Origin: Macrostomum lignano
Taxonomy: Eukaryota
Direction of reading: 5' to 3'
Length of the DNA: 64,000 nt
NCBI GenBank assembly: GCA_002269645.1
Contig: NIVC01003293.1
Coordinates: 119,012 to 183,011, forward strand
Part shown: in pieces, positions 21,201-21,653 of the stretch
How the letters are laid out: each line of letters begins with the position of its first letter
How positions within the stretch are numbered: position 1 is the stretch's first letter
Translations under genes and position numbers: made by a program
Notes under the pieces: model-generated
Told to the model about the DNA's origin: nothing
Seen by the model: the letters and a program-made list of their open reading frames with translations, nothing else
Databases searched by the model: none

Positions 21201-21653
21201 TGCGGCGGCTCTGTGACGTCACCGCTGACATGTTCCGGTGAGTATACCGATGCAGCTCCAAACACAATACCTTTGAAGACCAAACGGATGCAATTTAATT
21301 TCCTCATTTGATTTACAGGACCTGTGGCCACAACAGCGACACCGACTCGTGCATGGACAACTGCCACCATTGACTCAACTACCACCACTGGCACAACTGC
21401 CACCACTGACACAACTACCACCACTGGCACAACTGCCACCACTGGCACAACTGCCACCACTGGCACAACTGCCACCACTGGCACAACTGCCACCACTGAC
21501 ACAACTGCCACCACTGACAAAACATCTGTTTTGCAAAGATTCACACTCAGTCCCGACGATGGAGTGAACTGTGGCGATCAGTTAGGCGCAGCCGTCAGCT
21601 CAATTATTTTCATGACATTGTCGACACTGATTATCGTGCTGAAGCTCCACTGA
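15210..21653 (+). CDS. ADAM-family zinc metalloprotease paralog B, complete (~800 aa): signal, prodomain, reprolysin, disintegrin, Cys-rich, EGF, short Thr stalk, hydrophobic C-terminus
   Basis: Exons 15210-15222, 15302-15476, 15918-16058, 16135-16426, 16503-16571, 16674-16834, 16927-17014, 17110-17264, 17354-17534, 18434-18661, 19124-19332, 20794-20965, 21054-21237, 21319-21653. Total 2403 nt, open frame, all GT-AG. HEIGHNLGFEH at 17152-17184, Met-turn CIMNS, disintegrin start CGNGILEAGEQCDCG. Confidence 0.92.
15553..15731. mobile_element. hAT-type MITE (179 bp) in ADAM-B intron 2
   Basis: TIRs of ~55 bp starting CAGGGACTACTCAAACACCGGGACGGGAAACT. Perfect 8-bp TSD GGCAGATA at 15545-15552 and 15732-15739. 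Confidence 0.9.
18810..19027. repeat. (CTGT)n microsatellite in ADAM-B intron 10
   Basis: Direct reading of the sequence. Confidence 0.97.
19487..20712. mobile_element. Foldback/long-TIR element in ADAM intron 11
   Basis: ~19487-19790 is an imperfect reverse complement of part of ~20235-20712. The same arrangement is in ADAM-C (~30850-31140 vs ~31465-31810). Single arms occur at ~6030-6510 and ~35990-36260. Confidence 0.6.

Follow-up and report, generated by a model that had tools for sequence, protein, structure and literature searches.

A Macrostomum lignano ADAM gene predicted to end in a GPI-attachment signal in place of a transmembrane helix and cytoplasmic tail

The 64,000-nucleotide (nt) stretch of Macrostomum lignano DNA analysed here (contig NIVC01003293.1, positions 119,012 to 183,011; hereafter the window, within which all coordinates are given) carries ADAM metalloprotease genes or gene parts labelled A, B and C. 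The gene model of B was assembled by tblastn and splice modelling, using its paralog P0001 (BOX15_Mlig004569g1) as a guide. ADAM-B comprises 13 coding exons on the plus strand, spanning 15289-21653, and all 12 of its introns are GT..AG introns that keep the reading frame, giving 24 canonical splice sites; the exon 1 donor is TAG/GTAACA. The spliced product has 800 residues, the length given in an earlier reading of this DNA (the original prediction). The features of the locus are collected in Table 1.

The predicted B protein has the domain order of a metalloprotease-disintegrin. Its hydrophobic N-terminus is predicted to be an endoplasmic reticulum (ER) signal peptide, both by hydropathy and by alignment with the N-terminus of P0001, and the prodomain contains a Cys residue (ANRCHYK) that may be the cysteine switch. 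The zinc-binding motif HExxHxxGxxH is followed, within the same exon, by the Met-turn CIM, and the domain aligns with solved reprolysin and ADAM catalytic domains. The alignment along solved ADAM22 and P-III reprolysin structures in the PDB extends over residues 194-676 (best E = 6e-63), and alignment to ADAM22 ectodomain structures places the disintegrin, Cys-rich and EGF-like domains C-terminal to the protease. Pfam Disintegrin and ADAM_CR domains are present in P0001. By its sequence, B appears to be a functional gene for a meltrin/ADAM12-like metalloprotease-disintegrin. The original prediction called B catalytically intact, which the complete zinc motif and the CIM Met-turn bear out in part. 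Two features call for caution: the junction of prodomain and protease domain, RRRR in P0001, contains no furin-type RxxR site in B, and the residue after the third zinc-binding His is Met in place of the family-typical Asp. Since site and Asp are both absent, protease activity is not assured; with that reservation, we infer that the B protease is active.

Several lines of evidence indicate that B is a live gene. Positions 6981-18921 of the window (11.9 kb) match the last 12 kb of the Mlig_3_7 contig NIVC01002017.1 with 99.7% identity, which places the window in the genome of this flatworm. The GenBank protein PAA61587.1 (BOX15_Mlig016139g1), which is partial since its contig ends, corresponds to residues 300-485 of B and confirms junctions 6-7, 7-8 and 8-9. 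The GenBank annotation of Mlig_3_7 was built from a genome-guided transcriptome (PMC5730564), which is evidence that B is transcribed. A second model, UniRef A0A1I8FWR5, has junctions 9-10, 10-11, 11-12 and 12-13 as in B and breaks off inside the repeat of exon 13. Public M. lignano models thus reproduce seven B junctions, three of the seven coming from the transcript-based GenBank model; transcript-based support covers exons 6-9, and exons 9-13 agree with ab initio models. A (TGTC)n repeat lies within B intron 9 at 18806-19028, where the Mlig_3_7 contig ends.

At the homeologous locus L001 (NIVC01001489.1:112691-138406), P0001, an ADAM with a transmembrane (TM) segment, is followed in tandem by a B-like gene, B'. 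Comparison of exons 1-10 of B and B' yielded a dS of 0.134, a dN of 0.039 and a dN/dS of 0.29, and B is under purifying selection. In the transcript-based annotation the B' product has 797 residues, against 800 for B, and the TM-type neighbour has 887; the 3' end of B' lies ~3 kb past the end of the L001 stretch that was compared, and searches with B and with B' exons did not find the 797-residue product.

The C-terminus of B is encoded by exon 13. The exon begins at the acceptor tttacag/GA (21318/21319), which joins in phase to the EGF-like exon donor CCG/GTGAGT (21237/8). Read from 21321, it encodes PVATTATPTRAW, continues through a Thr-rich stretch and ends in DKTSVLQRFTLSPDDGVNCGDQLGAAVSSIIFMTLSTLIIVLKLH at a TGA stop codon, so that the B protein terminates in SPDDGVNCGDQLGAAVSSIIFMTLSTLIIVLKLH, exactly as the original prediction had worded it. 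In the tail, the other two frames meet stops early. An assembly frameshift within the repeat was considered and rejected: in copy C of the exon (32140-32461), the tail stands in the same frame relative to the repeat. Because this independent copy keeps that relation, the frame of the B tail is real and does not reflect an assembly slip in the repeat.

The published pattern of a glycosylphosphatidylinositol (GPI) attachment signal consists of ~10 polar linker residues, a small omega residue (G/A/S/N/D(/C)), an omega+1 residue other than Pro and a small omega+2 residue, followed by a hydrophilic spacer, for which 8-12 residues are quoted, and 15-20 hydrophobic residues (PMC10491789). The end of B fits this pattern, as had been proposed. 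Two candidate omega sites satisfy the rule, D769-D-G and N773-C-G. The spacer counted from D769 is VNCGDQ, at the short end of the quoted range, and is followed by an uncharged run of 20 residues, L778-L797, and by the three end residues KLH. The Thr-rich stalk precedes the tail and serves as the linker. Soluble ADAMs of the ADAM12-S type and ADAMDEC1 have no hydrophobic C-terminal anchor, and B is not of this kind: its C-terminal 19-mer is the most hydrophobic of the whole protein, with a mean Kyte-Doolittle hydropathy of 2.2.

The hydrophobicity of the tail was then compared with that of ADAM TM segments by a rule-of-thumb test, a simple position-independent sum on the scale of Hessa et al. 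2005. The best 19-mer of the B tail (L778-V796) has a Hessa sum of -0.57, compared with -3.9 for the TM segment of A and -4.5 for that of P0001. Among 96 TM-type ADAM homologs, drawn from an exhaustive representative search with P0001 as query, the median TM sum is -3.6, and only 2 of the 96 are as weak as the B tail. The tail, weaker than nearly all ADAM TM segments, is therefore a better fit to a GPI signal than to a TM helix. On balance, its sequence suggests that it functions as a GPI-attachment signal. The evidence is drawn from sequence only, and GPI anchoring of B is thus a well-founded prediction and not a finding.

A number of observations pull the other way, and these were weighed within the alternatives to which they belong. 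The strongest competitor, which we regard as unlikely yet deserving of serious attention, is a type-I protein with a minimal tail, in which L778-L797 is a stop-transfer TM helix, KLH is a three-residue cytoplasmic tail and no GPI is attached. The 20-residue LGAAVSSIIFMTLSTLIIVL run followed by Lys could act in this way: it is uncharged, the Lys fits the positive-inside rule, and the summed Hessa value of the run is slightly negative (-0.6 to -1.4). The end of copy C is longer and basic, KRVVLELKSIFH; the 12 residues that come after its tail are partly charged, which makes for a poorer fit to a GPI signal. The run nevertheless falls within the weakest 2% of ADAM TM segments by hydrophobicity, it contains five Ser/Thr residues, and small-residue triplets lie at the right distance upstream of it. 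In addition, the hydrophobic ends of M. lignano paralogs built in the same way lack either the length or the strength of a TM helix, with Hessa sums of +4.2 (P0173) and +0.9 (P0185).

Less probable again is that the tail is an accident of rearrangement with no role in anchoring, the protein being secreted or degraded in the ER, or the gene being on its way to becoming a pseudogene. The locus is rich in retroelements, inverted duplications and scrambled ADAM fragments, namely copy C, the chimeric A and a minus-strand tail exon, and the missing furin site of B would suit such a history. The tails of B and copy C show no clear purifying selection: they differ by 8 non-synonymous and 3 synonymous changes, an omega (dN/dS) of 0.83 that is based on too few changes to be given much weight; those inside the hydrophobic run are all uncharged swaps (V/I, I/T, V/M and L/M). 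Set against an accident are the intactness of B over 800 codons, with all 24 splice sites canonical, its transcription and its omega of 0.29 relative to B', together with the recurrence of a stalk and hydrophobic end both in further ADAM paralogs, whose tails are unrelated, and in phyla beyond the flatworms.

The prediction also requires that B end in exon 13. Donor sites were scored with a matrix built from B's own 12 donors, which themselves score 7.3-11.5; within exon 13 no GT does better than 5.5, the score of the one at 21581 (TCA/GTTAGG), just 5' of the hydrophobic run. A search of the plus-strand open segments from 21654 to 34800 (13 kb) found no TM-grade 19-mer, while recovering the TM segment of A as a positive control, and tblastn found no second A-type TM exon in the window, the only copy being at 10239-10651. 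The polyadenylation-type motifs ATTAAA and AATAAA occur 313 and 365 nt past the B stop codon. The ~330 nt that follow the stop (21654 to ~21985) are conserved in copy C, with ATTAAA inside the conserved stretch and AATAAA just beyond it. The topology of a type-I protein was not found in B, which ends three residues past the weakly hydrophobic run, with no TM or tail exon downstream on the plus strand; the original prediction had likewise given B no such exon. Two observations weigh against this ending. A search with a peptide of the EGF exon plus tail matched no tail-containing transcript or protein in the databases searched, a silence that is weak evidence, as this word-indexed search overlooked near-identical M. 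lignano proteins present in the collection as well. The only public model that reaches the B tail is an ab initio one, P0171, which loses the frame within the repeat and has a different end. Taken together, exon 13 is very probably the terminal coding exon, and we infer that it forms the 3' end of the main mRNA; we are confident that B stops in this exon and carries neither a TM nor a cytoplasmic domain. That the main mRNA exits or skips exon 13 to join an unrecognised TM or cytoplasmic exon is very improbable: the weak donor directly before the hydrophobic run and the transcript-based P0001 model, which joins the EGF exon straight to the TM exon, would allow it, but the plus strand offers no TM-grade open segment for 13 kb and the window no second A-type TM exon, the sole other cytoplasmic-tail relic is on the opposite strand (~27166-27279), 3' untranslated region (UTR)-like sequence with ATTAAA is conserved in copy C, and the B' product is 797 residues long.

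If the tail is a GPI signal, the following pathway can be proposed for B. The signal peptide would bring the protein into the ER, where the weakly hydrophobic C-terminal 18-20 residues would hold it transiently at the membrane. GPI transamidase would then cleave at D769 or N773 and attach the GPI anchor. The protease would sit on the outer leaflet atop a mucin-like stalk, without a cytoplasmic tail that binds SH3 or WW proteins, and would be releasable by phospholipase or by shedding. In this way, a stalk rich in Thr and probably O-glycosylated, together with a GPI signal, would take the place of a TM helix and cytoplasmic tail in the last coding exon of B.

Paralogs A and P0001 were examined as comparators for the anchor. 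The original prediction held that A splices out of the same Thr-rich exon to a TM exon, and this did not stand. Exons 11 and 12 of A and the start of its Thr-rich exon have 89-95% nt identity to B and only 73% to the P0001 gene, whereas its TM and cytoplasmic exons are the syntenic, homeologous counterparts of the P0001 exons. An in-frame donor (AA/GTATGT at 8406/7) and acceptors at 10202 or 10239 make the splice compatible with the sequence, but the donor is poor, scoring 4.5 on the B-donor matrix. No homolog of the B tail was found in the A region from 8380 to 11400, and GenBank transcript-based annotation has no gene on the A TM exon region (6981 onward), a weak indication, as repeat-overlapping transcripts were dropped from it. 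The first ten exons of A, its 5' half, lie outside the window, and a retroelement adjoins its 5' side. From these sequence relations, A appears either to combine parts of two lineages or to have been gene-converted; it therefore cannot show one exon spliced in two ways. The claim of splicing from the same exon is also unfounded because P0001, the genuine TM paralog, has no Thr-rich exon, its EGF-to-TM intron being just 275 nt long. An origin of the B tail through loss of A's donor site was likewise rejected: A exons 11-13 are a B-like duplicate, the donor scores low, and 3' of the repeat the two genes have unrelated sequences.

The valid contrast in anchor type is that between B/B' and P0001. 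P0001 is the best database relative of B and its nearest TM-type relative. Their ectodomains are 53% identical, and they agree in exon structure and in tandem arrangement, the P0001 homeolog lying directly upstream of B'. Unlike B, P0001 has the RRRR furin site, a strong TM segment (-4.5) and a 190-residue tail that contains PPxY, and it is without a Thr-rich exon. Because P0001 has this strong TM segment and Pro-rich PPxY tail, the difference in anchor type between the paralogous lineages is real at the sequence level.

The 18-nt Thr-coding repeat is a coding minisatellite with a large copy-number difference among the three genes, Tandem Repeats Finder (TRF) reporting 70 copies in A (7143-8406), 8.9 in B and ~5 in C. 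Unlike at L001, the 5' part of the TM-type gene has been lost or replaced at the window locus. A long terminal repeat (LTR)-type retroelement with protease, reverse transcriptase (RT), RNase H and integrase open reading frames (ORFs), followed by a Pro/Ala/Glu-rich repeat, occupies ~500-6000 and adjoins the B-like fragment of A. The ab initio model UniRef A0A1I8FVI7 (1385 residues) fuses the retroelement integrase, A and B into one protein. A tandem 65-nt repeat of 11 copies lies between A and B at 12968-13691.

Copy C is a scrambled, partial ADAM and probably a pseudogene. It lacks exons 9 and 11, carries exon 10 in inverse orientation (29765-29547) and has the end of exon 8 overwritten by a (CAGA)n array of ~1 kb (28408-29432). 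In its tail exon, a 10-nt deletion removes the stop codon of B, so that the frame continues to TLTIMMKRVVLELKSIFH. The arrangement of copy C is either a real rearrangement or a misassembly. Between B and copy C, in inverted orientation, the minus strand carries at 27166-27487 a relic of a canonical last cytoplasmic ADAM exon ending in GYTLPSHQAWPERPLPRYL, comparable to the P0001 end YTLSSPQAWSERPPPRYF; it is preceded by a 15-nt repeat of 14.7 copies coding for (GYTPP)n. Just 3' of B, the segments 23753-24771 and 25771-26729 form a near-identical inverted duplication around an RNase H/RT-like ORF (24818-25678).

Further along the window, an ADAM exon-1-like segment ending in EYTHVWDSADMALGCRPWLSVQVKTGDLTELHNITFTLST, with 47-50% identity to the first exons of B and P0001, lies at 45789-45923 beside an N gap (~45.9-46.3 kb), which suggests another ADAM family member truncated by the assembly gap. 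A single-exon ORF of 371 residues on the plus strand (34816-35931), with several hydrophobic segments in its product, resembles a multi-pass membrane protein; there is no called gene on record for it. Repeated Cys-containing modules at 51690-55997, also on the plus strand, look like tandem sushi/CCP-like domain exons and include near-duplicate blocks at 53607-53966, 54553-54912 and 55647-55997. A long low-complexity repeat is present near the window end (59693-61010).

Table 1 Features of the ADAM genes A, B and C in the window
Feature	Position	Strand	Basis
B exon 1: ATG, signal peptide MTTSGALTLLCLTCLAISASG (15289-15351), start of prodomain	15289..15476	+	ORF, tblastn vs P0001
B exons 2-8: prodomain and M12B metalloprotease domain	15918..17534	+	junctions GT..AG, in frame
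B exons 2-5	15918-16058, 16135-16426, 16503-16571, 16674-16834	+	
B exons 6-8	16927-17014, 17110-17264, 17354-17534	+	
B zinc-binding motif HEIGHNLGFEH, residues 328-338	17152..17184	+	translation; alignment to solved P-III and ADAM structures
B exons 9-12	18434..21237	+	tblastn, splice modelling, PDB match
B exon 9, disintegrin	18434-18661	+	
B exons 10 and 11, Cys-rich	19124-19332 and 20794-20965	+	
B exon 12, EGF-like	21054-21237	+	
B exon 13, very probably the terminal coding exon: stalk rich in Thr, candidate GPI signal, stop codon	21319..21653	+	
18-nt tandem repeat, 8.9 copies, coding (T-G/D-T-T-A-T)n mucin-like stalk	21357..21516	+	TRF
Candidate omega region D769-D770-G771-V-N773-C774-G775	21555..21575	+	fit to published pattern
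Weakly hydrophobic C-terminal segment LGAAVSSIIFMTLSTLIIVL, residues 778-797	21582..21641	+	Hessa-scale sum
End residues KLH; TGA	21642-21650; 21651-21653	+	
Probable 3' UTR, with ATTAAA (21966) and AATAAA (22018)	21654..22023	+	motif search, copy C comparison
3' part of the A ectodomain: exons 11 and 12, both B-like, and Thr-rich exon, no B-type tail	6056..8406	+	nt identity, TRF
TM exon of A, coding the strong TM segment IIAILVGAAGVFILLVIISV, and exons for the Pro-rich cytoplasmic part	10239..11223	+	tblastn, 83% identity to P0001; synteny with L001
Copy C, scrambled partial ADAM: protease exons 6 and 7 with a portion of exon 8 (+); exon 10 in inverse orientation; exon 12; exon 13 copy	27885-32749		
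Copy C of terminal exon, ending NPDGGVNCGDQLGAAISSIIFMTLSTLTIMMKRVVLELKSIFH	32140..32461	+	

To determine whether the B ending is confined to this gene, the best 150 ADAM representatives were surveyed. Of these, 11 end at most 8 residues from a hydrophobic segment, although some such endings may be truncated gene models. The M. lignano proteins PAA88086.1 and PAA78458.1 (P0173 and P0026) end in SNASASRVANWLTTALPLFLLSLLLKQQSALVWQL, the former being a full-length ORF from start Met to stop with a Hessa sum of +4.2. An ORF from the Trinity assembly of the glass sponge Vazella (P0177) ends in SSNGNRILISHYVLILSILYFLLLVKL and passes the omega rule. The leech Helobdella protein XP_009009316.1 (P0137) has a short hydrophobic C-terminus and possibly ends in the same way as B. 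P0185, an ADAM found with B' as query, ends in SKSAERSLAVNFECVFLAALATLWAAVGCFRI with a Hessa sum of +0.9; it is a MetaClust record with no organism on record, counted here among the M. lignano lineages. Another ADAM homolog with a stalk and a short hydrophobic C-terminus is the ENA entry P0096. The B-type ending is shared by copy C, two further M. lignano ADAM lineages, the sponge and possibly the leech and, to judge from its 797-residue product, probably by the homeolog B'. Like B, the stalk-ended ADAMs other than B' and copy C have a full ectodomain and mostly a Ser/Thr-rich stalk, end 0-10 residues past a short hydrophobic run and have no cytoplasmic domain; their tails show no sequence homology to that of B.

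That the design recurs makes it more likely to be real and weakens the case for a lineage-specific feature. Of the lineage-specific switch in anchor type that had been proposed for B, the difference from P0001 stands at the sequence level, but the feature is not confined to B, the same ending being found in other ADAMs. Full-text literature searches found no natural GPI-anchored ADAM, the matches being a loose sentence in a review and an engineered ADAMTS13, and literature searches for the Mlig gene identifiers gave no usable match; the design seems to have been overlooked so far. We tentatively suggest that GPI-anchored ADAMs may be a real, recurrent and unrecognised class, in which at least three M. 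lignano lineages (B/B', Mlig000885/000688 and P0185) would independently have swapped the TM segment and cytoplasmic tail for a mucin-like stalk and GPI signal, as may the sponge and possibly the leech. An ending shared by flatworm, sponge and possibly leech would make this a point about the class rather than a curiosity of one gene. Such ADAMs, if the suggestion is true, would be sheddases that reside in rafts, can be released and are no longer coupled to regulation from the cytoplasm.

In textbooks, the ADAM sheddases stand as type-I membrane proteins, whose TM and cytoplasmic parts control trafficking, substrate choice and the binding of partners such as iRhoms, tetraspanins and SH3/WW proteins. 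A natural ADAM held by GPI would occupy a different membrane microdomain, with a different mobility and release route, and would escape inside-out regulation. Both transgenesis and RNAi exist for M. lignano, and the GPI prediction is therefore directly testable.

The meltrin/ADAM12-type ADAMs, of which insect 'ADAM12-like' proteins are the nearest relatives characterised by name and ADAM22 is the nearest with a solved structure, share with B the signal peptide, prodomain, M12B domain with HExxHxxGxxH and Met-turn, and the disintegrin, Cys-rich and EGF-like domains. Where they have a TM helix and a Pro-rich cytoplasmic tail, B has a Thr-rich stalk and a short hydrophobic C-terminus; it also lacks the furin site and carries Met instead of Asp after the third His.

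Switches between TM and GPI anchors among paralogs or isoforms are known from the CEACAM family, Fc-gamma-RIIIA/B, NCAM-120 versus NCAM-140/180 and T-cadherin. As proposed for B, these relatives differ only in their C-terminal anchor, and the GPI form loses cytoplasmic signalling motifs. They belong to different families, and the end of B is an unrelated sequence following a repeat and not a mutated TM exon. Among zinc endopeptidases, MT4-MMP (MMP17) and MT6-MMP (MMP25) have been experimentally proven to be GPI-anchored after a stalk, in a family whose members are otherwise TM or secreted proteins; GPI-anchored MMPs are also described in reviews. Unlike B, they belong to family M10 and not M12B, have no disintegrin or Cys-rich domains and have a non-homologous anchor region, and the GPI anchor of B is only predicted. 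Should that prediction be correct, B would be a GPI-held surface member of a TM or secreted zinc endopeptidase family, and the ADAMs would possess a parallel to MT4- and MT6-MMP within the MMP family.

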